Below are positions 1 through 42,458 of a DNA stretch of 64,000 nt, in pieces (positions within the stretch are counted from its first letter, which is position 1; each line of letters opens with the position of its first letter). Location of the stretch: the NCBI GenBank assembly GCA_051294905.1, contig CM119371.1, positions 34,968,001 through 35,032,000 on the forward strand, in the 5' to 3' direction. Under the pieces are notes generated by a model. That model was given only the letters and a program-made list of their open reading frames with translations, was not told the origin of the DNA and ran no database searches. This DNA is from Botryllus schlosseri (Eukaryota). Position numbers and translations under genes: made by a program.

Positions 1-917
1 ATATCATATCTTCCTTGTGACCGTCGGATACATTATTGAACCGCCTACAAGTGCGTATTATTGGCGCTACACCAATATATTTAACTAAAAATTAACACAA
101 AAATGCTATCTTGCCCACCACAAGTACCATAAAATATATTTCAACGCGAGTTTTTTTGCTCTTCTAAGATTTTTTTATGAAAAGTCACGTTGACATGCAG
201 ACCTGCAGTATTTATCACGGCCATATGAAGGACCAAATATTGCTTGCAATATAAAGCGCACATGTTTTTACTTTCTTATGAAAATCAATATTTGGTCCTT
301 GGCGTCACCAATTATTTTGCCACAAGAATATTTAAAAATTGGTGTTGTTTCGAATGATCGTCAACTGTGTTCTCTTCGAAACATGATATATTATAGAAGC
401 TTGAAAGCTGTGCGTTTATAATTGGTTTAGGGTTGCAGTTTAGTTTTGCGTTTCGTAGGATCGTTGATTACCGTTACCACACAGTACAACTGTACCAAAT
501 TACAAGGTTTCGAGTCGCAAGTCAATCTAGCGTTTTTAGTTTTGGTTCGAGTCGAGTCCGAGTCTGTAAGTCAGGCTGAGAAGGTTCGAGTCCAAATCAT
601 AGTGTTGAGACTCTGAAGTGTTCACAGTTGAATCTTGATTTCAACTTGATTGGACTCAATCATTTACGAAACCAATTTGAGTGCGGAAAGTTACCAATTT
701 TACATCGTTTTTTTTAATAGTATATGAACAGCTTCTTTGAGGTACAGAACTTCAATATACAATTGAATAGTATATTCATATTGAAATGGACCCGAATATT
801 TTTGGCTGACACTCGTCAGGGGTAATCGTCAGCAACTATGTAGAAAATTGGAAAGAACATTGTATATCAACAATCGTATCACAAAATATGACGTCACCAG
901 CATGAAAGAGAGAGCGT

Positions 918-1298
918 TCAATGTACTATTTTTAGGTGGTACACGAACTCCTTTTGTTGACAGAGTTTTGGTTGGTGCATTTTGATAAAAGTCGGCTCCA
1001 AGGCACACAAATGGAATTGTGAACGGCCCCGCCCAACGATTCCAAATCGGTTGTCTCGATAATAATTCGCGCTAATCGGATTATCTAACAGATGTTTGCC
1101 GAGGGCAGAATTAATGGCCTTTGATCGATCAGCATCAATCTTGAGCGGATGAGTTAAGGGTGAGCTTTTCACTGAGCGTGAGGCACGTGTTCTGATAAAT
1201 CTGGGGACATGCTGGTTTATGCGTTCCTGCAGACGTTTTGACGCTCTTCCCACGTAGCCACAACCACAGTGGCGCTTATATTCGTACTCTACACTCGA
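918..1298 (-). mobile_element. 5'-truncated Penelope-like retroelement fragment (GIY-YIG endonuclease C-terminus)
   Basis: The minus strand reads SSVEYEYKRHCGCGYVGRASKRLQERINQH...SALGKHLLDNP...FHLCALE..FIK..QPKLCQQKEF, the typical Penelope GIY-YIG domain. Confidence 0.8.
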
Positions 1299-1302
1299 AC
1301 GA

Positions 1303-1360
1303 TTCTAGACTTTGCTAGCGGACTTACCGATGACCCAATGAGATTACGAAATCTGAGGGT
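1303..1360 (+). pseudogene. 3' remnant of a SNORD97-like box C/D RNA
   Basis: TTTGCTAGCGG..CCGATGACCCAATGAGATTACGAAATCTGAGGGT aligns with the 3' ends of the copies at 6135 and 7036. The guide has two substitutions, no box C is found upstream, and it abuts the Penelope fragment. Confidence 0.6.
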
Positions 1361-1909
1361 GGTGGCGTGTATTTGGATGTTGCCTTGTGTGTTATTTTGG
1401 GCAGATGTGGTCAAAGTAGCCATTGCTAGCACTAAAGTCAAAGTGACATCAATTACTGGTGGAGTACTATTGAAAGTAATGATTTCGTAGCAAGCAAAAA
1501 ATGTGATAATTCAAATCCTAGTTTTCTTTGAAATCCAAACAGTTTAGTGGCAAGATTATAAAATCATAACCACTTCCATAGGAAATGCAAATATACAAAC
1601 GTTGTGCTCCGACAATGCAGAATACATTGTTACAGACCGTGTCTGGTTTTAGATAGATTTTGATGGTGCTTATCTTGGACAAAACATGGAGATACACAGC
1701 TGGTTAGTCACATAGATACCGTTGTTTGTATTACTGTCCCTGTGAATCGAATCATATTTTCGTATTGAAGTGATATCAAATGAATATAATGATTATATTC
1801 GGCTGACACTCATCAGGGGTTGGCAAGTATAGTAGAGAATCGGGAAGAATACTCTACTAGTTGCTGACTATTACCATTGACGAGTGTCAACACAAAATAT
1901 TGGGGTGTA

Positions 1910-2713
1910 CCGTAATTTTCCATGTATAATGCGCAAAATTTTCCCGATTTTTTGGCCTAAAATCGGGAGTACGTATTATGCATAGGCACAAAAAGCCTTG
2001 AAAAAAATCTCCCTCGAAACATAACTCTAAATCACCCTTTCTTCATGTTTGTTTTAACCGCGCAACACATTCAGCCATCATGCCCGGTAATTAGTATTAT
2101 CAATGTTGCGCGCTGCCAATTAGCGAGAAGCGTGTTGCCGATTAGCGTCTGCACTGCTCCGCTGTGCAACAGCAAGCGACCTCCTGGTGAGTTGGTTGCC
2201 GTTTGTACGCAAGCGAAATTAGGTCACTGGATTGCTGCACCCGCACGCGGCAATTCTCGCTGATTTATCGCGTCAACAACAGGCCTGAACAATCGCATTA
2301 ACAGCACGCCATGTGCGCAAGACGTAATCGCTGGCCTACACACTAGTCGCATCTCCAACAGGCCTAGTGCGCACGACATAACCGTTTGCCTGAACAATCG
2401 CATCTATAATAGGCCTTGTGCGCAAGATATCGTCCTGGCCTGAACTATCGCGTCGCGGGCCTCGCAGGCTTTGGCTGCTATCATCGTTAGAGACAATGCC
2501 GTTACGTGTATAATGATTAGCGATGGTTATGTCATGATTGTTCAACAGTGACATCGCAAAACAGAATGACATCGAATACTAAAACATAACTATTCATGTA
2601 CTGCGAATGCAGGGTGCGTACTATACATGGGTACAGGCTTTTCCTCAGAATTTACACGCCATTTTAAGGGTGCGTATTATACATGGGGGCGCACTATATT
2701 CGGAAAATTACAG
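1910..2713. mobile_element. pogo/Tc2-type MITE (CCGTA termini, TA TSD)
   Basis: TA|CCGTAATTTTCC ... GGAAAATTACAG|TA, internal ~60-bp subrepeats; second copy at 10292-11146. Confidence 0.8.
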
Positions 2714-2845
2714 TATTTCATTAGGAATATATTATTCAATTGTATAGGCTAATGAAGTTCTGTACTTCCATGAATGTAAGTAATTGATAATGTCAGATTT
2801 TTTTTTCGAAACTCAAATTATTCTTGAGCATTTGATTATTTGCAG

Positions 2846-5800
2846 CCGATGTGGGTTTGGGACGGAGAGAACGGCATGGTTAACCGAGAAATCACCTTCG
2901 TTCCGGGGCTGTACAAGATCTTCGACGAAGTTTTGGTGAACGCTGCCGATAACAAGCAGAGGGACCCGAATATGTCGAAGATAAGAATTGATATCGACGG
3001 GTAAGTCAGAATTAGGGGGTTGCGAATGTTGAATTTGAGGTAAGGTTGTACAGTAGGGCTCTTCAAAAATGACTTTTTTCTCAAATCGTACTGGCTAGGC
3101 CTACTTGATAAAATTGTTAGGTTACCTAATTTAAGCCTACACACAAAATTTGGTTCAATTCCAGCCATTAACCGCTTTGCTACAGGAGAAGAAAGTTTCC
3201 ATTTATAGTATAAACATAAATAATGAAAAATTTGTAAATTTTCTGTTCACCCCATGAAAGTGTTAGGCTGTCTAGGCTATAGAAACGATGTAAAATTATA
3301 GCAAAGAAACAGTTCCCGAATTGAATTGCACAATTAGATTACAAGCATTTCTCACTAATTAGCCCCAAAAAACTAGAATTTTTAATTGTCAAATCTGACC
3401 TGTACAATAGGGCTCTTCAAAAATGACTTTTTTCTCAAATCGTACTGGCTACTTGATAAAACTGTTAGGTTACCTAATTTAAGCCTGCGCACAAAATTTA
3501 GTTCAATTCCAACCAGTGAAAGCGGAGTTATTGCCGTCGAAAATTTTGGATTTGAATAAAATAGTAGCCTATTTACAGTGAGCACCACAACTATAACAAA
3601 TAAACGAAGAATCGGTCACCGTAGATACTATTTTAGTCAAATCCAAATTTTTCGACGGCAATAACTCCGCTTCCACTGGCTGGAATTGAACCAAATTTTG
3701 TGTGTAGGCTTAAATCAGGTAACCTAATAATTTTATCAAGTAGCCAGTACGATTTGAGAAAAAAGTCATTTTTGAAGAGCCCTATTGTACAGGTCAGATT
3801 TGACAATTAATAATTCTAGTCTTTTTGGGCTAATTAGTGAGAAATGCTTGTAATGTAATTGTGCAATTCAATTCGGGAACTGTTGCTTTGATATAATTTT
3901 AATTCTAATCTAATCTCTGCTGAAAACCCTGCAGGGAAACCGTATGGTGCGGAACGAGCCAAGCTTGGTTTACGGATATCTGCCGTTCTCATGCTTATAA
4001 GATCAAGGTTTGATATGATGATATGAACTCCAATACTGAATTCGAAAAAACTTGGAATTAAATTCCGGGTGAGGAAGAAATATTGCTATTCTGGTTACAA
4101 TCGAATTTGTGAAATATTTCCATGCTCTCATTATAATTCCAATTTAATATCTGGGTATCCTCTTGATGCTACAAGTGAACTGTACAGTGTGAAACCATAG
4201 TGTCCTATATGGTGTCGACACAAGCAAATCTCACGGCTCAGTGAAATTGTATCACGTCACAATTTCCATTTGGCTACAGGCAATTTGACGGTCATTTTTG
4301 ACCGGCTTGCCGAGCATTAAATTTGGTAAAACGGGTATCAATCGAAAGCTGACTCTGCACTGATGATGAAAATATAAATTTTATTCCGCTCGCGGCCCTG
4401 GAACCCCCACAATCAGCCTCGAATTTTTCATTGTTATGGAGATTGGCATTGGGACGCAACAATGCTGTCTGGCTCTTTTTCTCTTGAGCTATTCTCTCGT
4501 TTCGCCAGACAGCATTGTTGCGTCCCAATGCCAATCTCCATAACAATGAAAAATTTGAGGCTGATTGTGGGAGTTCCAGGGCCACTAGCGGAATAAAATT
4601 TATATTTTCGTGATCAGTGCAGAGTCAGCTTTCGATTGATACCAGTTTTACCAAATTTATTGCTCGGCAAGCCGGTCAAAAATGACCGTCAAATTGCCTA
4701 TAGCCGAATCCAAATTGTGACGTGATACAATTTCACTGAGCCGTGAGATTTGCTTGTGTCGACACCATATAGGACACTATGGTGAAACGATCCCAGCTTG
4801 CTGTTTAGAGATTTGCTATTATCGCGCTCAAAAAAGCTTTTTCTCGCAAATTCGGAATTTGATGAGATTTCAAAGTTTTTGCGAATTTAATGCTTCTAAT
4901 TTTAATCTAATTTGGAAATAACTGCCGCTGTAGTTCTAGTGTAATAATATGTAGTTGTCTTGCAGAGAACGCAACCTGATCTCGGTATGGAACGACGGCA
5001 AAGGCATACCCGTGGTAAAGCACAAGGGAGAAAAACTCTACGTTCCCGAACTCATTTTCGGACACCTGCTCACCCCCAGTAACCATGACGACGATCAAAA
5101 AAAAGTCACAGGTAATTTTCGAGAGCGGACTGATTGTCTCGCGACGTTTCGGGCTGAAACGGGTGTTTTTTGTTGTGTTCAGGCGGCCGTAACGGATACG
5201 GGGCGAAACTGTGCAATGTTTTCAGCACCAAGTTCACTGTGGAGACGTCTTCGAAGGAATATAAGAAAAAGTTTAAGATGGTGCGTGATTTGGTGAACTG
5301 TAACAGAAGTAGTCGAATTAGTCGGCTATCGGAAGTGTTCTAGTCCTAGTTTTGCTCAAGAAACTGAAAAATCGGCAAAATGCTATGAAAATTGGTACTT
5401 GCATACTGACCACTGGGGCTGTTTGTAAAATCACTTTTTTTACAATTTTTGCACCTATTTGATAAAATTAGTAGGTTGGCTAAAAATAAACGCTGCACCC
5501 CAAATTTGGCTCAATTCCAATTTGTAGATGTGAAGCTACGGGAGTTTGAAAATTCTGAATTTATTATAAAAAAAAACATAATTTCTATTTCAAAGTTTAC
5601 TGTCCACTCTGTGAAAGTGTTGAGTTGTCTACGAAAACGATGTAAAACAAATCTGACGCAATTCCAACCCGTAGAAACGAAGTTATTTAAGCTTTTCATT
5701 CTGGGATTACCTACCGTCAATGTTATTTTTGCTAAATCCTAAATTTTCAACTCCAATAACTACACTTCCGTCGGTTGGAAGTTAGCAAAATTTGTCAAGC

Positions 5801-8800
5801 ATTGTACTTGTAGACAATTTATCAATTTCATAGGGTTGGCAATAGAATTTGTAAGATATATTTTAAGTGTTCTTATAACAATTTCAAATTGTTCAAACTC
5901 CTGCAGCTTCACATCAACCGCTTGGAATTGAGCCAAATTTGGTGTGATACGTTTTTTTAGCCAACCCAATAATTTGATAAAGTAGCTGCAAAAATTTTTA
6001 AAAAAGTGATTGAACAACCCTACTGACCATATGTGAATATAATAATCTTACGTGGATATAGCAATCTTATGACAATGACAGCTAGTCTATATTCAGTCTC
6101 GAACTACTTGGACAAGTGCCTTTGTGAAAATCTAAGCTCTGTGATGACAGCAATGCCTTGAGGAAGCTTGCCGCGATCAAAGCCTGTTCTATAGAGACAG
6201 ATTTCTAAACTACGCGAGAGGTAATTGGTTCTAAATTTTGTGGTCACTCTAGGCCGGGCTTTGGTTGCGTGCGGCTCCGATGACCAATTGAGATTATGAG
6301 ATCTGAGGGCTGGTTATAATTTTGATTATCGTGGATCGGTTGTTATTGTTGAAAAGGATTGACTGGCTCGGTTTTCAACAGGTTGTGTTTTTCAGACGTG
6401 GACTGGTAATATGGCGCAGGCCGGGCCTATGAAGCTGTCGGCCAACGATGAAAAGGATTACACGTGTATCACTTTCACGGTGAGCATATGGCAGTATTGC
6501 TTTTTGCTTATCGTAGCTATGATCTCCATAATTACAGATTTCCAGACCCCTTCAAAAGAGCGAGTCATTTAACATAACCCAAACTAACCCTAACCTTGCA
6601 TTAGTACAGGCCTAGACTATATTTTTCTTCATTTTTAGACAATGCTCTCAGCTCTGTTCGAATAAACCTCACTTGATGGGTATTATAGACACTGGAGTGA
6701 AAAGACGTGCAAAAAAATGCCTTCTCCAAAGTTACCCTGAATGCTGGAGTAATTTTGGACACAAATAATTAAAAAATATACGCTACCGATGGACGAACAT
6801 GAAGATTGTGAACCAGCTAAATAGCTAATTCTAATCTAACCCCAGAAAAACACAAAACTTCTTCCTCCTGTGCCAAAATAGTTGTCAAAGCTGAAAATTT
6901 TGTAAACGTGGGTTAAAGGTGGTGTTAGCGGGATGGTAGCTGTTAAGTTGGGGGTGTGCTTGTCGAATTGTATGCTCCACTGTAAGTTAACCGTCCCAAT
7001 TATGTGTTCTATAATGCAATGCCCGCTCTGCTGCTTGCCCAATGATGACAACCGTGCCTAGAGGAAGCCGGCTGCTTTTGAAGTCCGGCCCAGCGGACGC
7101 TTGGCACGCCACTTTGATCGTTAACTCGATCTGTGTTGTCCAGTGACCGCGGGGCTCTACTTTGCTCGCGGCCCTTCCAATGACTTTATGAGATTATGAG
7201 ATCTGAGGGCAGCGGTGATTGGTGATGTAATGTTTTGATTTCGATGGAAGATAATGGCGCTAGTCTCCGTGGTAATGTGTGAATAACAGGACTGGGTCTT
7301 GTGGGGTCGTGCTTGAAATCTGTCAGATAGTGCCGATAGCTCATTTATCAGTTCGAAATAGTAATTTTTCTATAATAAAGCGAGTATGGTATCCTCAAGT
7401 AATTAAGGGGATCACTAACATTGGAAATATTGTACTTAAGCTCAAAATGATTCTACTTGATGGAAGGGATCATTATATAGCTAATTTCACAGACACTGCA
7501 ATAACTCCTAGATTTAGCCTGGTATTAAATACTCATTTATCAGCTAAATGTAGTATTCAATATACAGTAACGCAAATATGGCACTTTCGTGTTATTTAGG
7601 TGTCTAAGAACTCGTCCAAATGTTTGTAATAATGCGCATAGCGACTCTAGCTGATTGGAAGAGACCTATAACCCACTTTATCTTGCTAATTTTGTGAACA
7701 ATTACTGTGATGCACATTGGATAAGCGCATTGGTTTTAATGCAAAGTTTGTGGAATTGGAATTTCAGCTGTCGATTTTCTAATTATTTATTAATATAGCT
7801 TCGAGTAATCGAAATCTAATGCAGAAAATGTCAAAATTCTCTATTCTTGAATAGAAAAAGTCAAATTTATGTAGGTACCAGTAATTGGTGTCTGTTTCAA
7901 TGTGTTAATATTTTTTCAGCCCGATTTGAAGAAATTCGGCATGGACAAATTAGACGCGGACACGGTGGCGTTACTGTCTAGACGCGCCTACGACATTGCC
8001 GGGTCAACAAAAGGCGTCATTGTCTATCTCAATGGCACTCGGTTACCGGTAAGCTGTCGAATGCTTTACTTCTTGCTCCGAGACTTGTAAAACCTTACGA
8101 AGCTATTTCTGCACCTTCCTTGTGCGGCGGCATATGCACATGATGCACTCACGGTGTGCATGTGCACATGAACCGCAAAAACATCGCGGACAAAAATATG
8201 AAATGTCCCATTTCGGTGATTGAATCAGTCTGACGTTGATTGTTTTAGGTGAACAATTTCAAAGATTACGTCGAGCTATACACGAAAAAATGTACGGATG
8301 AAAACGGGGTTCCCTACGAGACGGTGTATGAAAAAGTGAATCCGCGTTGGGAAGTGAGTAATTGCTGTACTACGGTAGTAGCTTGATGTATATATGCAGA
8401 AGGGGTCAATAACTAAGTTCTTTACTGTCTCAAAGTCCTTGTGTGGATTTTGCCTGCTATCCAGCACATCAGCAGACCACGTCCTTGCGTTTCCGTGCGG
8501 CGTCGTGGGGGAAGAATATTCAATGTGCGATATTACTTACTTTAAACCATTCGCAGAATGTCTCTGACACAGTCGGGATAATTCTATTGCCCGGGTTTCG
8601 TACATGAATTGTATATGAAGCAATAGATTATGTAGATATAATTGTGATTCAAATCTAATTTGGATAAGAAACTAGCTTTAGTTTTGATTTCAATCTAATC
8701 TGGAAAATTGTGTATCTATAACGCTAATTGTAAACTAATTTTGAAATAAACGGTATCTATAATTCTGATTTGTATCTAATCAAGAAAACTGTGTAGCTAT

Positions 8801-11800
8801 AGCTCTAATTGTGAACTAATTAATAAAAAAAACTGCATAACTATCATACTAACTGTAATCTATTCGAAAAGAAACTGTAGTTATAATTCTAATTCTAATC
8901 TAATTTGGAAAAACTGGGTGGTTATAATTCTAATTTTAATTTAATTTGGAAAAGAACTGTAGCTGTGACTCTGATTGTAAACCCATTTGGAAAACAATTT
9001 CATAGCTATCATTCCAACTTTGATCTATTTGAAAGAAACTAAGTTGTAGTTGTAATTCTAATTCCAAACTAATTTGAAGAAAAAACTAGCCATAATTCTA
9101 ATCAAATTCGAACAAACTGTGTAGCTAAAATTCTAATTTTAATCTAATTTGGAAAAGGACTGTAGCTATAGCTCTGATTGTAAACTAATTTACGAAAAAA
9201 ATGCGTAACTGCCATTCCAACTTTGATGCCAACTGTGTAGTTATCATTCTAATTTCCAACTAATTTGAATAAAACTAGCCATTATTCTGATTCTAATCTA
9301 ATTCGAACAAAATGTGTAGCTATAATTCTAATATAATTAATAATAAATAATGCAAGACTCTTGACGGCCAAGACCAACATTTCATTGTAATTTTGAAGAA
9401 TAGTAAAGTTACATCGTGATTGGTACTTCGTCTATTAGTACTGGCTCTTGAAAATGTGACCAAAAACTGTTGAAAGTGAGGAAAATTGGTATATTTTGAA
9501 TGTGAAACATTCAACTCTACCAAGCAAGAGTTTTAAAACGTTGCTTTGGTAAGATATTTACTGAACTGACTTGGACTTACGGCTCTTGACTTCCGCATTG
9601 GAATTGATACTTGATTCAGGTTGGAGTACTGAATCATTGCGCTCAGCCCTTCATAATACGACAATAATAACAACATATCATCTGAAATCTCGACTTAGCT
9701 GCGACTCTGAAGCGGTTCCGTCAGTCGCCTACCCTTTTTTAGGTTTGCATCACCTTATCGAAAAAAGGTTTCCAGCATTTGTCGTTTGTGAACAGCATAG
9801 CCACTTCTAAAGGGGGCCGGCACGTAGACTACATCACCGACCAGGTTGTGAAGAAAATATTGGAGATTGTGAAGAAGAAAAACATAGGCGGAAAGGGCTT
9901 CGATGTTAAGCCGTTCCAGGTAATTGCTTGCGTGTTTCTTGTACAATGTAGCGGTGTTGGTTTTGGACTCTTGAAGAATATTTCCATCGTGGTTTCAAAT
10001 TTTATCTCTTCTCTTCATTGCCGCTTACTTTTCCAGATCAAGCATCATTGCTGGATTTTCGTTAACTGCCTCATCGAGAACCCCACGTTCGACTCGCAAA
10101 CCAAGGAGCGCATGACGTTGGCGGCGAAGAAGTTTGGATCCACTTGCGCCTTGAGCGACAAGTTCCTGAAATCGGTGAGTGTTTAGAGATGCTCAGTAGG
10201 GTTGTACAAAAATGACCTCTTTTTTGGATTCTAGCCATTCACTCATTAAATTGTCAGGTTACCTTAAAAAACGCTGCACACCAAATACATACCGTAATTT
10301 TCCATGTATAATCCGCAAAATTTTCACAATTTTTCGTCCTAAAATCGAGGGGGCTCGTATTATACATAGGAACAACACGCTTGAAAAAAATCTCCCTCGA
10401 TAAAAAACTTGAAATCACACCTTTCTTCATGTTTGTTTCCAATCGCGCATCACTATCATCCATCGCCCAGTAATTCGTATTATCAGTGTTATGCGCTGCC
10501 AATTAGCATAAAGCGTTTTGTCAATTAACGAGAGTGGTCTGCACAGCACGTAATCTCTTGCTGAGTTGGTTTGCCGTTTGCACGCGAGCGTCGTTAATAG
10601 AATGCTGAATGTGCGCGCGGGCGGCAATCCTCGCTGATTCATCGATAGGCCATGTGCGCAAAATATAATCGCTTGCGTAATCAGTCGCACCTCCCGACAG
10701 GCGTGGTGTGCACGACATGACCGGTGGCCTTAGCAATCGCATCTGACCTTGTGCTCAAGATGTCGCGTCGCTGGCCTCGCGGGCTTTGGCTGCTATCTAC
10801 TATCGTATAGAGGCCATACCGTTACTTGTATAATGATTAGCAATCGCATCTATACTAGGCCTCGTGCGCAAGACGTCGCGTCGCCAGGCTCGCAGGCTTT
10901 GGCTGCTCTTTACTATCGTTTAGAGACAATGCCGTTAATCACATAATGATTAGCGATGGTTATGTCATGATTGTTCGACAGTGACATCGCAAAACAGAAC
11001 AACATCTTGTACTAAAACACAGCTATTCATGTACTGCGAATGCAGGGTGCGTACTATACATGAGACAGGCTTTTTCCCAGAATTTACACGCTATTTTAAG
11101 GGTCCGTATTATACATACGGGGGCGTACTATACTTGTAAATTACGGTAATCTGTCGCTGAGCCAATTTAAATTTTCAAGCCTGATTGATATTAGAATTTT
11201 GACTCGGTACAGATATCGTTTACGTTTCAACCACAGTAATTTGACTAACACATCCTGTAGGCTATTAATTACATGTTCTTACAATCAATTTCTATCTGAG
11301 TAAGAAACTTGTGAACTCTGTTAGAACTGGCGAACTCTATGAATCAATTCATAAGATATCCTCGCTGATGCAGCCTGTATTTTCTGCCAGTATCAAAATG
11401 TGACGTAATACGACTAGGAGTCTACTTTTTGCAATTCCGTCGCCAAACCTCGGATTTTGACCCGATTCGCGTTTGCAGGCCTCATCGTGCGGTATAGTGG
11501 ACGGCGTCATGAACTGGGTGAAATTCAAGACGCAGTCGCAGATGTCCAAGAAGATGTCCGGGGCGAAATCTAACAAGATCAAAGGTCGCACCACGTCATT
11601 TTTATGCCATTGTTAATCACTTTAAATTATGTTTTTTTTAATGAAATTTTTTTCAGTTGTATTTGTTTGGGCATTTTGACACATGATGACTATTAAAAAT
11701 TTTTATAAACTTAGTAATTGTTTATAATTTATTTTGTCAGGCATTCCAAAACTGGACGACGCCAACGACGCCGGCACCAAGCTGTCCCAGGACTGCACCC

Positions 11801-14800
11801 TGATCCTGACCGCGGGAGACTCGGCCAAGACGCTGGCCGTGTCGGGGCTCTCGGTGGTGGGCCGTGACAAGTTTGGGGTGTTTCCGCTGCGTGGTAAATT
11901 GCTTAACGTGCGGGACGCGACCCACAAGCAGGTGGGTCCGATTTTTTTCGCCCCCTCCTTGATTTACGCTAGGCTATGTCTGGGAATGATTATATCGGAT
12001 GACAGAAGGCTAAGTGTTTTGTCGATGAATGTTCAAGTATTCATACTGTATGACCCAGATTATTTACTAGGGCTGGAATAAATAGAGCGTCCGATTTTAT
12101 GCGTGGTAACAACCACTTGAAAACTTTCACAAAATCTGCACGAAAATATTGCCTGTTACGAATATTGCGGTTTCCAAAATCATTGTTTCCCAGGGTTGTA
12201 GCCAAATCACAGAGCTCCGAGTCACAAGTCAATCCCACTTATATAGTTTTGACTCGAGTCAAGTCGAGTCATTTTCAATTCACCACCGAGTCAAGTCCGA
12301 GTCCAAGTCATCGAGCAGAGGTTCGAATGACTCGAGTCCGAGTCAAAGTCAATATACAATGTTCTTTCCAATTCTCTACTAGTGGCTGACGAGTGTCAGC
12401 CAAAAATATTCGGAACATACTATGCAATTGTATACGCAAGTCAAAATGTCCGTGTTACGGAATCTGTTCTGTATAATGGCACCGATTTCAGGTGGTTCAA
12501 ACCTCTCGTCTTTTATAAGTGAAGCCTTGGCGCACATCTTATGACGGTTATGTTCAAGTATTAGCGGAATTCAATTACGCACGCACGTCGCACATATGTC
12601 GCATGCCACATACCTAAAAAAATGTCATGCGTGGCATACCTTGCATACCCAGGTTCTGCGCCTATGACTGTGATACATATTCATTCAACATGGCTATGAA
12701 TATAGCGCTGTGTTATAATGTCGCGACGCGAGATGTTTCAATAAACATGCCTAGCCTTTGTCAATATAGAACTGATGTTTTTGTGTATTTAATATGGATT
12801 TTATATCTCTGTGCTTTCAATATGGTGTTGTCAGTCATAAAAGCTATTACCTCACGCTTTTTGCATCATACCCACTGCTTCAGTTCCTAATTCTACCTAA
12901 AACGGTCTAAAAATCAATGATTTGCTTACAACTTTTCTTCTGTATATTTCGAAGACCAAGCTGTGCGGAAGTAAGATAGAAACTTGTTGCTTCCGCATCT
13001 TTTAAGCCCGAAATCAGCTTTCTAGCGTTAGCGGTTATCGGTATAGAGCGAAATTAGATGTTTTTGGCTCGTTCGGTGAAATTGCACGACCACTAGAGGG
13101 TGCATGAACCAAAAAATATAAATTTTTTGATATTTGGCAGCAAAATTTTCCATTTTTCATTCCACCCTGTCATGCAATGTATGTCTCCTGTACCGTCGTA
13201 AAGCAAATGTAAGTTTCCGAGCATTGATTGTGAAAAAAGTGTAAAAACGATGATAATTCCTGTCTAGTAAAATATTTCTTCACAGTTTTTGGCAAGACTC
13301 TTGGACGTACAGAGCTTCATTATATGCTTGAATAATATATTCATATTGAAATAAGACCCAAATGTTTTCGTATTTGTCAGCGTCTCGTATTTGTCAGATC
13401 GTGGAGAACGGCGAGATTAACAACATCATCAAGATCATGGGACTGCAGTACAACAAGAAGTACGCCGACGAGACGGACGTTAAGAGCCTGCGTTACGGGA
13501 GACTGATGATTATGACAGATCAGGTAATGGCCTTGATTCAAACCTTGCTTTGAGAACATTACCTGTAATGATTAGACTTCGGTGCAGTATACCTTATGTA
13601 GGTACATGACTGTTAAACTGTATTCATACTGTCTGAACGGGGGCTGTCTCTGACCGCGGTGACATAGTTGTTTGCGTGCGGAACAATATGTTATCGTCTA
13701 TGTGTTTGGGTTTCAGGATCACGACGGATCTCACATCAAAGGCCTGCTGATCAACTTCTTGCACGCAAACTGGCCGAAACTGCTGCATCAAAGGTAGGCG
13801 TGCCGATTTTGTTACCAAGTCGCAAGGTTCCGAGTCGCGAGTCGATCTTACTTGTATAGTTTTGACTCGAGTCAAGTCGAGTCATTTCATTTGGATACAC
13901 CACCGAGTCAAGTCCGAGTCCAAGTCAGCTAGTAGAGCAGGGCTTCTCAGTTAGCATCCCAGTTGTATTTTGTGATATGACGATAAGGGGGGCGCGAAAT
14001 TTTTCACTATCAAAAAGGGGGGCGTGTCTACAAAAAGGTTGAGAACCACTGTAGTATAGGGTCGAGTCCAAATAGTTTCTGGCCCTATTTACCAAGTATC
14101 AGTGCCGATAGACGAAATACCAATATTGCGGTGACTTAACTATTCTTCGGAGTTACGATGAAATGTCGGCCTTGAATTGCTGAATTCATAACAACTGGGT
14201 AATTGACTCCAATTCGCGTGCTGCTCTATGCTTGGTCCCTGCTTTCTGCCCTGCCGGTGAATACAAAACTGCCGGCAGGTTTCATAAACAGGGGATATTG
14301 AACCGCAGTATGCATGTGCAAAATTTCCATCGGTATGGAAGGCGTTGCATTTAGCTTACTACATTTAAATTCGAAAAATTCTTGATGAAGGAGCAGTCCT
14401 CTAAAAGTTTGTGTAAATTTTGCTTTTCGAGTGGACGTTGAATAAGGTGTGAAAGCAACCAAGATGCTGTCGGCACCCTGTTCCAAATATGATAGAGTCT
14501 GAAATTGCCGTTGAATATGTGTGCAAAACGTTGTAACAGCAGCCGTTATCCGCGGAAACGCACGGTATTTGAACTGCAGCTAAGAGATACCAAATACGAT
14601 GTACGATGGATTGGTCAAAATAAGTTAGGTTCATATCAAATCACAGTTATGAAAACGGTAAAATGTCTGTTGATTAAGGGTTGTAATGACTCGAGTTGCG
14701 ATTTTCTGATTGTAATTTCGAATAGTTAAGTAACCACACTATTGGTATTTCGTTCATTGGTACTGGTACTTGAAAACGCGACCAGAAACTGTTGAAAATG

Positions 14801-17800
14801 AAAAAAATTTGTATGTTTTAAATGCGAGCCATTCGATATCACCAAACGGTGATAAGACTTCAACTCGGAAACTGAGCAGTAGGGCTGTTCAAAAAAACCT
14901 TTCTCCAGATTTCACTGGCTACTTGATAAGATTGTTAGGTTGGGCAAAAAAACGCTGCACGCCAACTTTGGCTCCATTCCAACCAGTAGAAAGTTTTAAA
15001 TTAATGATTGGAAAATGAAAAAACAAAATTTCAAAATTTTTCTGTCAACCCCATAAAATTGTTAGGCTGTCAGTAGAGACAATGCACACCAAATTTGGTT
15101 CAATTCCAACCACTAGAAGCAAAGTTATTGCAGAAAAATTGTGATTTGAATAAAATAGTATTTACGGTGACCAACTCTTCAATTATTTATTATGAAATAG
15201 TGGAATTGGAAATTTTTCTACTGCTATAACTTCCCTTCTAGTGGTTGGAATTGAGCCAAATTTGGTGTGCATCATCTCTACTGACAGCCTAACAATTTTA
15301 TGGGGTCGACAATAAAAATGTGAAATTTACATGTTCTATTTTTCAATGATAAATTCAAAACTTTCTACTACAAAAACCTCGCTTCTACTGGTCGGAATTG
15401 AGCCAAAGTCGGTGTGCAGCGTTTTTTTCACCAACATAACAATTTATCAAGCAGCCAGTGAAATCTCAAGGAAAAGTTTTTTTGAACAGCCCTACTTAGC
15501 AGTCAACGCGATGGCTTGGACTCGGACCTGACTCGAGTCAAAACTATAAACGTGAGCTTGACTTGTGACTAGGAGCTTTATTAGAATGAGTTATGTTTTT
15601 GGCTTGTAATCGCTTTGTAATAGTTATTTAATAGTATATTCGTGTTGAAATCTAGCCAAATATTTTCGGTTGACGCTCGTCAGGGGTAATCGTCAGCAGC
15701 TAGTAGAGAATTGGAAATAGCATTTTATGTCGACAATCGCATTACCTAAAATAACCCTGAACGCGTAATTACGTTTCGTCCAGGGTGGTGGAAGAGTTTA
15801 TCACGCCCATCGTCAAGGTGTCCAAGGGCAGCCAGGTCCTGTCCTTCTATTCCATCCCGGAGTTCGAAGGCTGGGAGAATTCCACGGCAAACTCGAAATC
15901 CTGGAAAGTGAAGTACTACAAAGGTTCGAATTTTCACTTGGATTTGAATCTAGGATCTGAAACAAGACTTTATTTTCAAAATATCACAAATGCCGGTACT
16001 TATTTTGGCGCTTATTCCACTCTGGTAAGACGTAGAAAGAAAGTTGTCGTATTAAATTTGTGTGATTGTTGAGTTTAATTTAAAAATCCCATTTTTGTAT
16101 CAACCATACTGCTTCAAAGTACAATTTGCAATCATTTTTCTAGTGTAAACGGAATACTTCATGGATTTTCAAGTCCGCCCCTCCGTAATTTTGTTTCATT
16201 CGTAACTTTTTTTCATCGAGTTTAGAGCGAAAAAGTCGATTTTTTCAAATTCCTGGGCCCCAGAATTTTATAATTGGACATTTTAATTGGTTCTCTACCA
16301 TCGTTGAAGCGAAAAATATCGATTTTAAAGAATTTTGCATGCAGTGCCAGCTAGTGGCAGGATAATTTTGGATGGCGTTATCTTTTGAACCGCTAAAATT
16401 TTTGAATGTGCTCGGAATTTGAAAAAAAGAACAACCTTTGTAAATAACTGACAATTCTGAGGGTATGCATTACGAATGTCGGAAAATTTGCTAAGGTATA
16501 ACGGAATGAGTCTGCCGTGGAAACGCTCTCTGGGACTGAAACCGATTCCCGCTCTTTGACAGGTTTGGGCACGTCTACCGCGAAAGAGGCGAAAGAATAT
16601 TTCGCAGACATGGAGCGCCACAGGATCCAGTTTGAATACGGCGGTCCCGCCGACGACGGACATATCGATTTGGTGGGTGTTTTGCGTACATTTTCAAGAC
16701 AAAGTTCTATGGAAGTGAGATAGAAACATTGTTGCTTCCGCAGATTTTAAACCCATAACTGGCTTTCTAGTGCAGTGGTTCCCAAACGGTGGGGAATTCC
16801 CCACTGGTGGGGAATTCAATGGTTTCTGGTGGGGAATAGACGCATTTCTTCAAAATTGTATACAGGACAGTCGACATATTCACGGGCGCAATTACCGCTA
16901 CCAGTTAACTGCTCTTGAATGTATGTATCGGAAATTATATTGCGTGTTGTTCACAAAACCTCATTTTTGACTCTGGATGGCCAATGATGGCGTCACAAAC
17001 GCATCCAGCACGGCTAATTTGACGTGAAATAACGCTTTCGCGAAATTATGAGCGTTATTGGTATCGGTTCACGATTCGTTTTATGTTGCAGTAATAGGCG
17101 ATTTTCTTGCGTACTGGTGTGGTTGTGTGTCTTGTGTAGTCAAACCAGCAAACAGCTGCTCTGTGATGACAAAAGTGCTGGGTAGTGAGGAACAGGACCG
17201 TAACTGCCGCACCCAAGACCCCCCAATTGGGGAGGGGGCGAGCTCGAAGGGGCCCAAAATTATTTCATGAATTAACATAATTAAAGTATTCTTTTAGATT
17301 TATGCCACTTTTTCGAAAAATTTTCGCGCTGCGTGCGCGATTTAATATTGCCGAATATCTGATTATTGGCCACCCTTCCCCCACGAAACTACGTAGTAAG
17401 GCGACGCACTAAACAGTAGACCCAATGCAGCTGATAAGTTGCAGGGAAAAGCGTACAGGCTCAGCGGGGGTTCTGGGGGCCCAGGAACAACGTTTTTGGG
17501 CGGGGCTGACAAAGAGCGGTTACGGTCCTGGTGGGGAATGAAGGCTCGGAATAAATCTGAAGTGAGGTATGAAGACAAAAAGGTTGGGAATCACTGTTCT
17601 AGCGTGAGCGGTTGCCAAGATACTACAAAATTAGCTATTTTGGGCTCGTTCGGTGAAATTGCTCGGTCACTGGAGGGCGTAAGAAGCTGAAATCATGATA
17701 GAAGCTGTTCATTTTAGATTTGGGACCAAATATCAAGTGTCCTTTTTGAAATTCCAATTTTTTTAATCACTCCACCCAAGTGCAGAGAACTGGACGTTGC

Positions 17801-20800
17801 CTAGGGGGTTGTTCGAAAATTAACTTTTTTTCAGGGAATCCGCGGATTCATCGATTGAATTGTTAGATGTCTAAAAAACGATGCACACCAAATTTGTCCC
17901 GATTTCAACCGGTAGGAACCGACACAATTAAAATTTGTGAATTAAAATATTGCTCTCGACCCTGTAAAAGTGCGAGTTGTCTACGAAAACGATGCAAAAC
18001 AAATTTGACGCAATTCCAACCCGTAGAAGCGAAGTTATTTTTGGTTATTCATTGATAATTCTAGGATTTCCCAAAGCAGAGTTGTAGCCAAGTCACGAGG
18101 CTTCGAGTCACAATTCGATCTCACTTAAAGTTTTGACTCAAGTTGAGTCCGAGTCCAAGTCAGCGAACAGAGGGTCGAGTCCGAGTCGTAGTATTATGAC
18201 TCGAGTCCAAGTCATTGTGTAATGTAATGTAAAGTATGGAACCATTTTTTCGTAATTATATTATGCTAGAGAGCAGGGTTGTAACCAAGTCACTAGGCTC
18301 CGAGTCACAATTCAATCTCTCTTTTATAGCTTTGACTCGAGTCAAGTCGAGTCATTTTCAATTCACCACCAAGTCAAGTCCGAGTCCAAGTCGGCGAGCA
18401 GAGGGTCGAGTCCAAGTCATGGTATTATGACTCGAGTCCAAGTCATTGTGTTGACTGCTCAGTTTCCAGCTGAAGTCTCGCCAAACCCACTTTTTATAAC
18501 TCTGTTTGGTGATATCGAAGGGTTCAGAGTTATAATATACAAATTTTCCTCACTTTTAGCAGTTTCTGGTCGCATTTTCCAGTACCAGTATCAATAGACG
18601 AAATCCCAATAGTGTGGTTACTTTGCTATTCTTGGCAATTACAATGAAATGTCGGTCTTGGCCGTCTGAGTCTCGAGCCATATGGCTTGGTTCGAGTCAT
18701 GCGCAATGACTCGAGTCCAAGTTAAACCGATACACAGATTGACTCGATTCGATTGACCCTGTCCCACAGTCATAGCTATTCTGGCGAATCCAAAACTTTC
18801 AACTGCAATAACTTTGCTTTTACCGGTTGCATTATTTTTTTCGTGCTGTTCAAAAACTAATAAAGTAACTTGAAATCTTGCCCAGGCCTTCAATAGGAAA
18901 CGCGCAGACGACCGCAGGGAGTGGCTGTCCAACTTTATGGCTTCCAGGCGGCAGCGGAGGGAGGACGGGCGTCCCGACGACGCGCTGTACAACGCCGACG
19001 TGAAGTCGCTGACCTACACGGAGTTTGTCAACAGGGAACTGATTCTCTACTCTTGCGCCGACGTGGACAGGTCCGTGCCCTCGTTGCTCGACGGTGAGAC
19101 TTTGCTGGAGTAGGTTTTCTTTGCTTTTCGTATTTCTGAGCACGCTAGTGCGAGAGTAGAAATTTACAGAACTAGAAAAGGGGGAGAGGCATAAAACAAC
19201 GCAATATGCTTTCTTTTGTCATATCCAAGCATTTGCAGGGATAGTAAACCAGTTTTATGACTCATATGCCGTCTGAATTTGGTCTTGAACTTGACCTAGA
19301 TATTGAATATCACTGAAGCGTAACCAAAATTAACAAACCCCCCTCAGAAAACTCTCCAGAACACGTTTTGATGTTTGAAACGGTGAAAATTTACACAGAA
19401 TACCGTGCCTGTCGACTTCTGATGTTCTGGCAGATTTTCCGACAATATTTCCCACTCGGAAAATATCTGGAAATTTTAGGTGATAAGTTGATAACCATTT
19501 TTTCATTTTATTTTTCTTATTATTATTTTTGCAAACCAAAATTTTTGAGTAAGGTGCTAAATACATCGGAAAAGTCTCAGCTTTTCATAAAACGTAGTCC
19601 CCGATGTCTAGGGCATGTCAACATGGAGAAGTCGGTGTCGGAGACATGCCATATCATATATGATACACCCACCTCGTAAGGGTTAAGGTATTTAAAACAT
19701 GGATTTTAAATCAGTGCTGATATGTGTTTAACGATTTGCTATCGGCCAGGCTGCTGACCAAAATTTCACTGCATCCATAAAAAAGACCGAAAAATGTCAT
19801 CGATAGGGCTTGAATCGACGCCCAATATTTTGCCGTAAGCCTGAAGTAGCCGTCTAGCGGATTGAGATACTCTCACTGCTCAGACGCGAGAGGGAACTGC
19901 GTTACGCGATTTTTTGAGATTAAAATATAATTTTATTTTTTTAATTCTTCTGACGTCACACGTAGGCCTTCTATCGGTATATGACCGCCTGATTGTCTTC
20001 CGCATGAATCTCTGCGTTCCAACGAGACATTACACGCTACTAGAAAGACAGAGAGGACAAGCATGACTCACGCCAATGAGTAATCGATTACATAGTCGCA
20101 TATTCTCGCTAAAGGCTAAGCGCGTCCAATTCTACATAACATAGGAGGCACACTGTCTTAGCGACGTTACCTATGTTATATATCTACATGCTATTGAAGT
20201 GTTATCAACCTCTTGCTTATTATGTGTAACGATAACTGTAATTGGTTATATGTCTTTTAGAACGGAAGGTACAATGGTTTACATTTCAAGTGAACATAGT
20301 TACAAATTCAATTTTTGCGTGTTCAATCTGCATTTCAAGCAGGATATACATTGATATAATAGGTTATACATGATCTGATGTATGCGTATTCATAAGAGCC
20401 ATCCATATAAAACGATTGTAACAGTTTATGACCAATACAGGTCTAGCTATCTTTGATTAAATAACGACTCCTCTGTTGAACAGTCGCGGTCTAGTATACT
20501 AGACAGCCGGTCGCAAAAGGTTAATGACTCATTACTAATTGAACGCAGCGAATTGCATTGTTAATTCATGCTGCTCGGTGGGTGTGTTGATATCAGGTAA
20601 TGAGAAAGTGAAGCTTTCGTTCTCCGAATTATGTGGACAAAATTGACTTAGTCAGACCTCAATTGTTGCGGTATAGTTTGCTACGTTGACTTTATTTTGA
20701 ATCTGGATTGCGCATGCGAATTGCGAAAGACACTTCGAAGGTAAACGCATTTACGGTTCAGGTTCGACAGCCTGTAATAATGGTCTTGGTCCATACATTA

Positions 20801-23800
20801 ACATTGTAAAGTAGATTTTTTTTCGAATTCTGAGCAACTTTTAGCGGGCCGCCACCCTCTCTACGCAGCTACTGCTACGGGCGGCGATGCGATAAATGGT
20901 ACTCGAATGAAACTTGATACACTCGGTCAAAAAAGAGACTGTTATTTTGTGGTTCCGTCGGTAGTATTCTGGGATGATTACATCTTGCAAAAGTCTGACG
21001 CTGCGTCTGCAGTGTTTGAAAGGCAATACTGAAAATATGACCAGAATCGTAGTAGCACCAATACAGTTCCCGTATGTAGAGCGATTGAAAGGCGCACCTC
21101 TACTCGTCCTGGCTTAACGTCTTCTGACAATGTTGTGCTTCCTCCAGGACTGAAACCGAGCCAGAGGAAAGTGCTGTTTACCTGCCTGAAGAGGAACGAT
21201 AAACGCGAAGTCAAGGTGGCGGAGCTCGCGGGCTCGGTGGCCGAATTGTCCGCGTACCATCACGGAGAGGTAATGATTACACGTAATAGGAACCCTGTGG
21301 AATAATCTTCATTATACTGGAATAGTATCTTCATGTTGAAATGAACCCGGGTATTTTTTGCTGACACTCGTCAGGGGTCATCGTCGGCAACTGGTAGAGA
21401 ATTAAAAGGGCATTGCTCATCAACAATCGTATCACAATGAGCACATCAGCAGACCGCGTCCTAGCGTTTCCGTGCGGCGACGTGGGGGAAGAATAACCAA
21501 TGTGCGATATTACTGACTCGAACCCATTCGCAGAATGTCTCAGACACAGTCGAGATTCTTCTATTGCCCGGGTTTCGTACATGAATTGTATATGAAGCAT
21601 TAGGCTGTTTATCTATGATTGTGATTCTGATCTAATTCGGAATTTTCATCAAATTTAGAAAATCTGTATAGCCATAATTCTAATTAAATTTAAAAAAGAA
21701 AGTAGCCATAGTTCTAATTTGGATATATTCGGAGAAAATATTTGTGGCTGTAACTCTAAGTGTAAACTGATTTGGAAAACTGTAGTTATAATTCTAATTT
21801 CAATCTAATTTGGAAAAACTGTGTAGCTGTAATTATGATTCTAATCTAATTTGGATAATTGTGTTGCTATGGTGCTGATTCTGTTGTTATTTAGAAAAAA
21901 ATCTATGTAACTCTAACCCATAAATATAAACTAATTGGATAACAAACCTGTTGCTATAATTCTAATTCCTAAATAATTTGAATAAAAAGTGTGGCTGTAA
22001 TTCTAATTCTAATCTAGTTTGAAAAGATGCAGCTATCATTATAATTTTAATGTAATTTGAAAAAAAAGTATGTAGCTGTAATAATTGATTGTCAACTAAT
22101 TTGGAAAAAATGTGTAGCTATCATTCTAATTTTAATGTAATTTGGAAAAAAATACGTACACGGCAGCTCCTTTTATAGTTTCTATCGTATTGTCGCAGGC
22201 CTCGCTAATGACGACCATCGTCAACATGGCCCAGAACCACGTGGGGTCCAACAACGTCAACCTGCTGCAGCCGATCGGGCAGTTCGGGACCAGGCTGCAC
22301 GGGGGCAAGGACGCGGCCTCGCCCCGTTACATCTTCACGATGCTCAGGTCCGCGAACGCGATCTCGCGATTTTTCTTAGGTTGTCATCCACATAGTGATT
22401 AGTTTTACGATAATTTAGAAAAAGTCTGATTGCTAAAAAAATTCCAATTGTCTTATCTCAAAAGGAGCATTTAAAACAAATTCTGATTATTTCTGAAAAA
22501 AATCCAATTGTCCAATTAAGTTGTCAATTTTTCCAGTATTGCTGTTATTTTTATAGATTCAGATCATATTTTATTTGTTATTTTTCTGATTGCTGAGTGT
22601 CGTTTGAAGAGACGTCGATTTCTCCGATTCTTTTTTTAATATTTATTTCTCTGTTTGTTTTACCGATTATTTTTATCGGTTTGTATATTTTAATATCCAG
22701 CCCGCTGACTCGGTTGCTGTTTCCTGCGCTCGACGACAACGTGCTCACCTGGTGCTACGAAGATAACCAAAGAGTGGAGCCGGAATGGTGAGTGTTTTCA
22801 GTGTCGGGGACTGTTTATTGTCGTGCGAGGCGTCTTCAACGCCCGCATTTCAATCCAAGCGTCCGAATCGCATACTTTTTGGTGCAATTTTGCATTCCGG
22901 GATGATTAGAATGTATGCAGACTCCTAGTGGTGACGTAAATATCGGGTAATATGACCGGAGTGCATTTCTACACGGTGCAGTTTACGGAAGGTTTATATA
23001 CTCGAAAACCAATTAAATTTTACTCACCCTCAACAGTTTCTGTCCCCGTTTCCCGAGTATCAGGACTGATAGACGAAATACCGGTGATGCGGTGACTCGG
23101 GTCGTTACAGCTCTGACTGACAGCGACGTACGTGTCTGAACCCGTTTCGATTTTGCGACCTCGCAGGTACTGTCCGATCATTCCCATGATCTTGGTCAAC
23201 GGCGCTCTAGGCATCGGGACGGGCTGGTCCTCTTTTGTGCCCAACCACGACGTCCGGGACGTTGTCGATAACATCCGCAGGCTGCTGGACGGCGACGACC
23301 CCAAACCCATGGTGAGTACTGCCGTCAATATGGGCCGGGGGCCAGGGCTACCCCTCGAGTTGTGAAATCAGTCGTACACATAACTTTTACACCGGGGAAG
23401 CAATCTTCTGAAATTAGGACACATATCTTTTTTTGACTTTACAATTAGATTTTATGATTTTTTCTGGCAACATTTTTCGGCAAAATTTTTTCTCGGTGGT
23501 CCTCGTAGATTCCAGACGAAACTATTTTTTTTACCCGAACAATGGTTATTCTCGAAAAAAAATTTGAAAAATGAAGAATTAAGGATATTTTCAATCGTGG
23601 AAAGTTGTGAACTTGATTGGCTGACTTAGGCTGTTCAAAAAAACACTTATTAGGCTCCCAGTAGAGATTATGCACACCAAATTTGGCTCAATTCCAACCA
23701 CCAAAAGCGATGTTATTGCGGTAGAAAAATTTGGATTTGAATAAAATAGTATTTACGGTGATTAGCTCTTTAATTATTTAGTATAAAATCATAGAATTAG

Positions 23801-41053: not shown

Positions 41054-42175
41054 GTCGGTTTTCGAATAACGCTCGTAGATTAGTGGGAATCGCCTATTCT
41101 ACTTATGGTCGAGTAGAAATTTGCGACTTTACTTCTATTTTGCGTAGCAAGGCTGGCTACTTTACCAGATTCGAGCAACTGGAAAATTTCTGGCTTAACC
41201 AAGATAGATTGAAAGTAGAATGATAGCTACCGTTGATTTCCGGATTAGATTGGTAGGGTTATTTTTTTACCTAAAAAAGTGAAGATTTTGATCTCAAAAT
41301 TCAAAATTTTGTCTAAAAAATGTTAATTTTCACCAACTGTCACAATGAGCAGACGATGTGCCGTCTACAACGGTAGGCCTGTAAAGTAGGCCACAAGTTG
41401 TAAAATGTCGAATGAAATGCGCGTTGCAAAAAAATTTCAACTTCGCAAACAATTTTGACAATTTTTTTGACTTATTTTGACGTGTCAAAAAAATCTCCCT
41501 ATCGATTAGATTTGGAAGTACTTCAATTATGTAACAAAAATCAAATTCAGTTTATCGTTGAATTAATTCTAAATCTGATCAAAATTAGTATTACTGGATG
41601 ATAATAGCTCTCGTGAGCATGAGAATGGCAAATGCATGTACTGTACTTGTACTTGTACTTGTTTTGCACTGTTATAAGTTATTTCTACCATAATACCGTA
41701 TTGTAGCCACTGGGATTCATCATTAGGCCTGATTTCGGTAAAATATTGGTTTTTTCATGTAAAAAGTAGCCTGTTTCTAAGCCAAAAACGCTTTTCCAGG
41801 CCAAACTGCTTCGTTAGGACAGCCAGTTCTCACCAGAAATGAAGATTAAGTGGCACAATTGTAACATTATGTGGGAAAACACCTAATTTGCATACGTTAG
41901 GTCAAAATTTGGTCAAAATTCAGTTTGTTAGGTCAAAAAAGTAAAAATTTGGATTTTTAGGTCATAATTTGGATTTTTAGGTGAAAAAAACCGCCCTAGA
42001 TATAACAGTTTTTTTAACTACTTTCCTGTAGAATTTCATGAAAACTAGAAATTATAGTATAGTTGAAATGAGTGCATAGAAGCATCTCGCTCATCGTCAT
42101 TTTTCTCAAATAACGGTGTAGTTGTCAGAGTCTGATTTCGACCGCCTCTGATTCCAACACTGTTTTCTACGCCAG

Positions 42176-42458
42176 GTTCATAAACTCCCAGAAACCGTCC
42201 CGTTGGCGCAGGTAGCGGAAAATGCGAAAATTCCGCGTTAGCGCTCTGGAGAAGTAGTCGCTGGAAGGCCTGAGCAAACTCGAGCGCCCGACTGATTCCA
42301 GGGTTAGGAGTCAAATCGACATTGGGTGTAGTAGACCTGCGAAGCACGCTGCGAGATACGATAAGTTCACCGACAGCGCGACCTCTACGACGCCATCGAA
42401 ACGCGGTGTGCAATCGATTTTTGACTTTGCGCACGATTCTGACAATTTCACGACCTAA
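42176..42458 (+). CDS. Candidate terminal exon region of TOP2 (structure unresolved)
   Basis: GC-rich coding-like island after a polypyrimidine-AG at 42175. The phase-0 reading gives VHKLPETVPLAQVAENAKIPR-stop (TAG 42239-41). A second frame, 42258-42458, gives SLEGLSKLER...RPAKHAARYDKFTDS...SIFDFAHDSDNFTT-stop. Confidence 0.35.

Follow-up and report, generated by a model that had tools for sequence, protein, structure and literature searches.

The locus and its gene model

The window, that is, the whole stretch of DNA analysed, comprised 64,000 nt of the Botryllus schlosseri genome (contig CM119371.1, here C1, of assembly GCA_051294905.1, C1:34968001-35032000). It contains most of a type II topoisomerase gene (TOP2), designated copy A, in which the metal-binding glutamate of the TOPRIM domain, E461 in human TOP2A, is replaced by alanine. 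Coordinates without a contig prefix are those of the window, and all features are collected in Table 1.

Copy A and a second, canonical copy (copy B) were modelled by tblastn against the caecilian TOP2A protein P0020 and a search for GT/AG junctions. The core of copy A (exons 1-27) encoded 1154 residues without a stop, with AG/GT at every junction, and its exons matched copy B one-to-one (90.6% amino-acid identity) as well as residues 7-1172 of P0020. The total of about 34 exons agreed with the count in a preliminary description of the sequence. Its statement that these exons hold no stop or frameshift stood for exons 1-27, and the C-terminal exons were each open as well; the splice chain of the latter was only partly recovered. 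Two candidate exons (38761-38827 and 40318-40455) did not match each other in phase, and since the mismatch is the same in A and in B, a small exon or an alternative acceptor appears to be missing from the model. Within the compared C-terminal exon blocks, all indels of A relative to B were multiples of 3.

The catalytic motifs were read from the modelled exons. The GHKL ATPase motifs (the E and N of FDEILVNAADN and the GxxGxG loop), the transducer QTK lysine (SQTK), the TOPRIM DxDxD cluster, and the winged-helix Arg-Tyr and YHHGE histidines were present in copy A, as had been described earlier for the DxD motif, the RY tyrosine, the ATPase E/N and the QTK lysine. The feature of a competent type IIA topoisomerase that was missing is the TOPRIM Glu of EGDSA, a metal ligand or general acid-base. 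Two of the substitutions specific to A, S148P and Y151H, adjoin the ATP site.

The Glu-to-Ala codon

The first codon of exon 11 is completed by the last base of exon 10, and the later part of the exon includes PLRGK...HKQ. The 64 residues of the exon aligned gap-free to residues 437-500 of human TOP2A (phmmer, full-length chain 6zy5_B), so that residue 25 of the exon corresponds to E461. The codon at this residue was GCG, and the replacement of the catalytic Glu by Ala reported in the preliminary description was thereby borne out.

Homologues were gathered from 1.84 billion cluster representatives, which were searched exhaustively with phmmer, and from a collection of 5.8 billion proteins. Glu was found in 253 of the 255 motif occurrences in the 253 homologues. 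The only other deviations were seen in P0226 (a 98-aa TOP2 fragment, LILTQGDSAK) and P0090 (TERDSA). Ala at the E461 position is thus confirmed as a real, uncommon variant. In one homologue, P0001 (1727 aa), the TOPRIM segment was repeated several times, probably through an artefact of gene modelling.

Over 9700-13800, the window was compared with raw RNA reads (X23) and with contigs from three sources: X1 is the probable source sample, X5 comes from an independent study and sample, and X8 is from another species. A C>A difference at 11813 was carried by a single contig in X1 (depth 17.9 of 71.8) and by a single contig in X5 (107 of 198.8), and the remaining depth (~54 and ~92, respectively) carried C. 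The C>A contig of X5 was 89 nt long (11755-11843), its four differences were the four of copy B (11780, 11784, 11788, and 11813), and it stopped exactly where A and B turn identical for more than 31 nt. As all four diagnostic sites match copy B, this contig was assigned to the paralogue; a GAG allele of A as the source of the signal was rejected on the same linked differences. No A-like contig with GAG was found in either individual. The preliminary description had reckoned with reads showing GAG, and the GAG contig that was found belongs to copy B, not to A. In the run of the other species, X8, only intronic repeats were matched.

TOP2 copies in the genome

The whole genome (495.5 Mb, 219 contigs) was searched in six frames with four different exons, the flanks of the matches were retrieved, and four TOP2 loci (A, B, C, and D) were found. 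A second, canonical TOP2, which had been proposed as a thing to look for, is thus present as copy B. It is full length, carries TEGDSA, and is arranged head-to-head with copy A, with the start codons ~32 kb apart.

Copies C and D (contigs 17 and 18) are partial. They were 99-100% identical where both exist, yet had different large deletions, and may represent the two haplotypes of a single third locus in decay. They were also considered as haplotigs of A, and this was rejected: their likeness to A is limited to the gene segment, amounts to ~88%, and comes without a B-like neighbour. The branch leading to C had 22 nonsynonymous and 30 synonymous changes; because its pN/pS (the per-site ratio of the two) is still ~0.2, the truncations look recent.

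Table 1 Features of TOP2 copy A and of the other TOP2 loci (window coordinates unless a contig is given)
Feature	Position	Strand	Remarks
Copy A, TOP2 paralogue	1..42458	+	tblastn against P0020, GT/AG refinement; Pfam PF00204, PF00521, and PF16898 on single exons
Exon 1	C1:34967742-34967870		131-259 nt before window base 1
Exon 2	2846-3000	+
Exon 3 (ATP pocket)	4966-5111	+	TSSNY to TPSNH in A only (human S148P, Y151H)
Exon 4	5183-5280	+
Exon 5	6396-6479	+
Exon 6	7920-8048	+
Exon 7	8249-8353	+
Exon 8	9743-9919	+	PF00204 match
Exon 9	10037-10174	+	QTK loop retained; QTKENM to QTKERM
Exon 10	11479-11584	+
Exon 11, first TOPRIM exon (human TOP2A residues 437-500)	11741..11931	+	AG at 11739-11740, GT at 11932-11933
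GCG codon, Ala for metal-binding Glu (human E461)	11812..11814	+	GAG in copy B, GCG in copy C
Exon 12	13398-13523	+	IMTDQ, first part of IMTDQ/DHDGSHIKG
Exon 13	13717-13793	+	DHDGSHIKG; acidic cluster intact across exons 12-13
Exon 14	15784-15923	+
Exon 15	16563-16672	+
Exon 16	18886-19093	+
Exon 17 (winged-helix)	21148-21269	+	LKPGQRK to LKPSQRK (G725S); KVAQLAG to KVAELAG (Q746E); YHHGE retained
Exon 18	22199-22347	+	Active-site SPRY tyrosine (SPRYIF) intact; PF00521 match
Exon 19	22701-22787	+
Exon 20	23167-23311	+
Exon 21	24559-24693	+
Exon 22	25008-25108	+
Exon 23	26997-27096	+
Exon 24	27727-27841	+
Exon 25	29022-29185	+
Exon 26	31090-31218	+
Exon 27	31638-31733	+
SNORD35-like C/D snoRNA, intronic	32598..32673	+	Before exon 28 of A; Rfam scan, gathering thresholds; only one listed in A
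C-terminal domain exons (approximate)	32762-32929, 37211-37307, 37621-37732, 38761-38827, 40318-40455, 40976-41053	+	All open
Last exon	putative stop 42456-42458	+	Ends ...HDSDNFTT*
Copy B, canonical TOP2	about C1:34888900-34935790	-	LILTEGDSAK, GAG; full length, ends ...DSDDGDSDF*
Copy B, counterpart tryptic peptide over the TOPRIM site			LSEDCTLILTEGDSAK
Copy C	C17:1236373-1250829		Exons 1-12 only, all gap-free with AG/GT; GCG as in A
Copy D	C18:565761-579975		Exons 1-8, then 16, 17 (truncated), 18 (12-nt deletion), and 20

Order of events and selection

Jukes-Cantor distances over alignable intron sequence were 0.112 between A and C, 0.171 between A and B, and 0.174 between B and C. The synonymous branch lengths concurred (A, 0.079; C, 0.088; B plus stem, 0.123), and both kinds of distance gave ((A,C/D),B), a tree whose stem is short. 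On this tree, GAG changed to GCG on the common stem of A and C, shortly after the duplication, and Ala has persisted through most of the period that followed.

Copies A and B were compared over 1153 codons. The number of nonsynonymous substitutions per site (dN) was 0.044 and that of synonymous ones (dS) 0.31, with a ratio (omega) of 0.14-0.17 by four methods. The copies are young, with a total A-B dS of ~0.3.

Changes on single branches were counted by parsimony, not with a likelihood branch model, over exons 1-12, where A, B, and C are comparable. On the branch of A itself, after Ala was in place, sites at which A differs from a shared state in B and C comprised 14 nonsynonymous and 27 synonymous changes (pN/pS 0.143); B plus stem had 22 and 42 (pN/pS 0.145). 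Neutrality by site counts, under which 78% of the changes would be nonsynonymous, was rejected for the A branch (binomial p = 1.5e-9). A context-aware neutral expectation was also derived by applying the A-branch spectrum from 1830 well-aligned intron sites, CpG included, to the ancestral coding sequence. It amounted to 42.8 nonsynonymous and 16.6 synonymous changes (p = 5e-7 for the observed 14 and 27); as the deficit persisted, CpG or mutation bias was rejected as the source of the low pN/pS. Among 217 columns near-invariant in 15 diverse outgroup TOP2s, A alone deviated at two (E461A and Q746E).

The preliminary description had pointed to dN/dS against relatives as a check, and here both the pairwise and the branch values from the copies speak for purifying selection. 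The shortage of nonsynonymous changes, together with the other catalytic motifs being intact, argues that A is not drifting neutrally and that it encodes a constrained protein rather than being a pseudogene. Neither annotated proteins of the species itself nor orthologues in relatives were found in the protein fragment searches, in which the best match was 91% identical, and the sea-urchin protein showed no region that separates the Botryllus lineage from vertebrates.

Role of the residue and proposed mechanism

The cleavage centre of a type IIA enzyme is formed by the tyrosine of one protomer and the TOPRIM metal site of the other. From this composition it follows that a homodimer of A would have two crippled centres and an A-B heterodimer one. 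The two catalytic metals are postulated to be bound by four acidic residues, of which E461 is one (PMC2528187). When the equivalent E477 of TOP2B was mutated, function was lost in vivo and the Mg2+ optimum was changed in vitro (PMC6163646). A gyrase in which only one centre works cuts one of the two strands and is unable to decatenate; with its C-terminal domains removed, such an enzyme also lacks ATP-dependent relaxation (PMC5137430).

The substitution, the copies, the order in which they arose, and the signature of selection are shown by the sequences, whereas the loss of cleavage, the dimer partners, and the biological role are inferred. Copy A is a full-length, lineage-specific duplicate of TOP2, with copy B, ~32 kb upstream on the opposite strand, as the ancestral canonical copy. 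A single A-to-C change (GAG to GCG) then removed the TOPRIM Glu that helps to hold the catalytic Mg2+, and the Ala state was passed on to a further, partial copy on contig 17. Copy A has stayed under purifying selection thereafter, keeping the ATPase, QTK, DxDxD, His, and Tyr motifs. Its product is predicted to fold, dimerise, and bind DNA and probably ATP, with cleavage of DNA weak or absent. Paired with itself, it would act as an ATP-gated DNA clamp. An A-B heterodimer, which the 91% identity of the copies suggests may form, would have one working cleavage site out of two and would nick DNA instead of passing strands, and the essential decatenation would come from B.

Taken as a whole, a constrained, cleavage-impaired TOP2 duplicate that serves as a clamp or modifies B as its partner is the explanation that we regard as moderately probable from the sequence evidence. 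A cleavage-impaired paralogue had been among the readings offered in the preliminary description, and of these it is the best supported, given a canonical TOP2 ~32 kb away and purifying selection on the branch of A. A more specific proposal is put forward tentatively: copy A may be a selectively maintained pseudo-topoisomerase II, serving either as an ATP-operated clamp or scaffold, or as a poison or nicking subunit that tunes TOP2 through heterodimers in, e.g., the germline or early embryo. This role is possible, with the balance of our judgement leaning against it.

Comparison with known systems

In domain order and in its vertebrate-like many-exon structure, copy A is the same as eukaryotic TOP2, as represented by vertebrate TOP2A and TOP2B (the core is 67% identical to caecilian TOP2A P0020), and the GHKL ATPase, QTK, DxDxD, YHHGE, and RY motifs are shared. 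It is unlike them in having Ala for the TOPRIM Glu, in S148P, Y151H, G725S, and Q746E, and in a shortened C-terminal domain without Ser/Asp clusters. Both TOP2A and TOP2B of vertebrates are catalytically competent, whereas copy A probably is not. It was therefore filed as a TOP2-derived candidate pseudoenzyme, TOP2 by descent with the TOPRIM Glu missing, rather than as a competent type IIA topoisomerase.

The residue altered in A is the one changed in laboratory TOPRIM-Glu mutants (human TOP2B E477, with TOP2A E461 as the model). Those mutants were engineered, whereas the change in A is natural, was fixed in a duplicate, and was followed by continued purifying selection. An A-B heterodimer would pair a functional with a dead centre, as in the type IIA enzyme of which only one cleavage site works (PMC5137430), although the defect of A would lie in the metal site and not in the tyrosine, and the heterodimer itself is suggested by the 91% identity. 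Among pseudoenzymes, the trypanosome AdoMetDC prozyme (PMC5201418) is likewise a duplicate without a catalytic residue that is under selection beside an active paralogue as a potential partner; copy A differs in being known from its sequence, and a regulatory partnership with B is hypothetical. In A, the catalytic residue was lost (E461A) while the paralogue of the active type (TEGDSA) lies ~32 kb away, and purifying selection followed the loss (14 nonsynonymous and 27 synonymous changes on the A branch, exons 1-12). In a literature search that was not exhaustive, no description of a natural TOP2 pseudoenzyme was found, and copy A would be an apparently undescribed case.

Roles of TOP2 that are independent of cleavage (scaffold, clamp, compaction) have been debated for decades, and the usual test relies on engineered dead mutants in cells that need the active enzyme. 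If the proposal is correct, copy A would be a ready-made natural separation-of-function allele beside a normal copy, and it would test in nature how a type IIA dimer behaves when one of its metal sites is dead.

Alternative explanations

Several observations weigh against a functional role for copy A, and most of them agree with a young, silent or dispensable duplicate that is becoming a pseudogene, with Glu-to-Ala as the first disabling hit and stops and frameshifts still to come. Expression is the main weakness. Among the indexed runs, none recorded as RNA contained the A stretch, and no read of exons 8-13 of A was found in ~6% of one bulk RNA-seq run. Six RNA reads on exon 10, with two start sites, showed the letters of copy B (G at 11523, T at 11534, and G at 11571). 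The RNA-seq pileup proposed in the preliminary description thus returned B-type reads and none specific to A in this portion of the run; the absence is weak evidence, because the signal of B in the RNA sample was also tiny. Upstream, A and B are alike for only ~320 nt before the ATG, where the duplication ends, and the full promoter may therefore not have been copied.

The protein-coding sequence adds to these points. When the amino-acid differences between A and B were polarised with caecilian and sea-urchin outgroups, 20 changes were assigned to the lineage of A and 5 to that of B (p = 0.004), a fourfold faster rate in A at conserved sites; those of A include S148P, Y151H, QTKENM to QTKERM, G725S, and Q746E. 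Copy A is thus somewhat relaxed or shifted relative to B. In-frame deletions have cost its C-terminal regulatory domain ~50 residues, including the Ser/Asp clusters of the WDSDSDS type present in B, and its last exon is strongly diverged from that of B. Large deletions have truncated or rearranged C and D, the sister copies, which suggests that A-type copies can be dispensable. If A is silent, it is an ordinary young duplicate at an early stage of decay.

We nevertheless consider such decay unlikely. A neutral copy would have ~72-78% nonsynonymous changes, against 34% (14/41) on the A branch (p = 5e-7 to 1.5e-9), and only 2 of the 217 near-invariant columns are altered. Reading frame and AG/GT junctions are intact in all 27 core exons, and the compared C-terminal indels are multiples of 3.

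A less probable alternative still is that copy A encodes a working topoisomerase II in which DxDxD holds the metals, perhaps with a higher need for Mg2+, and in which Ala is tolerated or specialising. Glu-to-Ala may not abolish activity completely, every other catalytic motif is intact, and purifying selection extends across the cleavage core. The near-universal Glu across eukaryotes (253 of 255 motif occurrences) speaks against it, as does the severe reduction in cleavage caused by Ala or Gln in gyrase B (E424) and yeast Top2 (E449). The changed Mg2+ optimum of the TOP2B E477 mutant in vitro would fit such an enzyme (PMC6163646). On balance, we regard a competent enzyme as improbable.

GCG is a single base away from GAG, and contigs with A at 11813 occur in both DNA samples, as would fit an error of assembly or polishing or a rare allele private to the individual sequenced. 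This explanation is dismissed as very improbable, because those contigs carry the linked differences of copy B at 11780, 11784, and 11788, GCG also occurs at the contig-17 locus and in the contigs of the independent sample and study, and the change lies on the stem common to A and C. The single-base assembly error entertained in the preliminary description is refuted by the same recurrence of GCG, and its suggestion of a deleterious allele is unlikely given that no A-like contig had GAG and that the change predates the split of A and C.

Small RNAs, introns, and repeats

In addition to the snoRNA of copy A, the Rfam scan found two SNORD35-like snoRNAs (L005, 7152-7227 and 7884-7957, minus strand) and one SNORA74 (L006, 5162-5365, minus strand) in copy B; the latter had no counterpart in A at the gathering threshold. 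Retention of A purely as a snoRNA host, another of the earlier suggestions, was rejected: both A and B host snoRNAs, and selection on the host function alone would not spare amino-acid positions, which leaves the shortage of amino-acid changes unexplained.

The duplicates are set apart by large changes in intron size. Intron 8 (9920-10036 in A) was 117 nt long in A, 897 nt in B, and 1705 nt in C, and intron 10 (11585-11740 in A) was ~150 nt in A and C and 1253 nt in B. Repeats at 10248-10521 and 12166-12439, both in introns, had contig depths of tens to hundreds of thousands in DNA runs and were also present in the run of another species and in RNA reads. Given this depth and distribution, they are members of very abundant, transcribed families.

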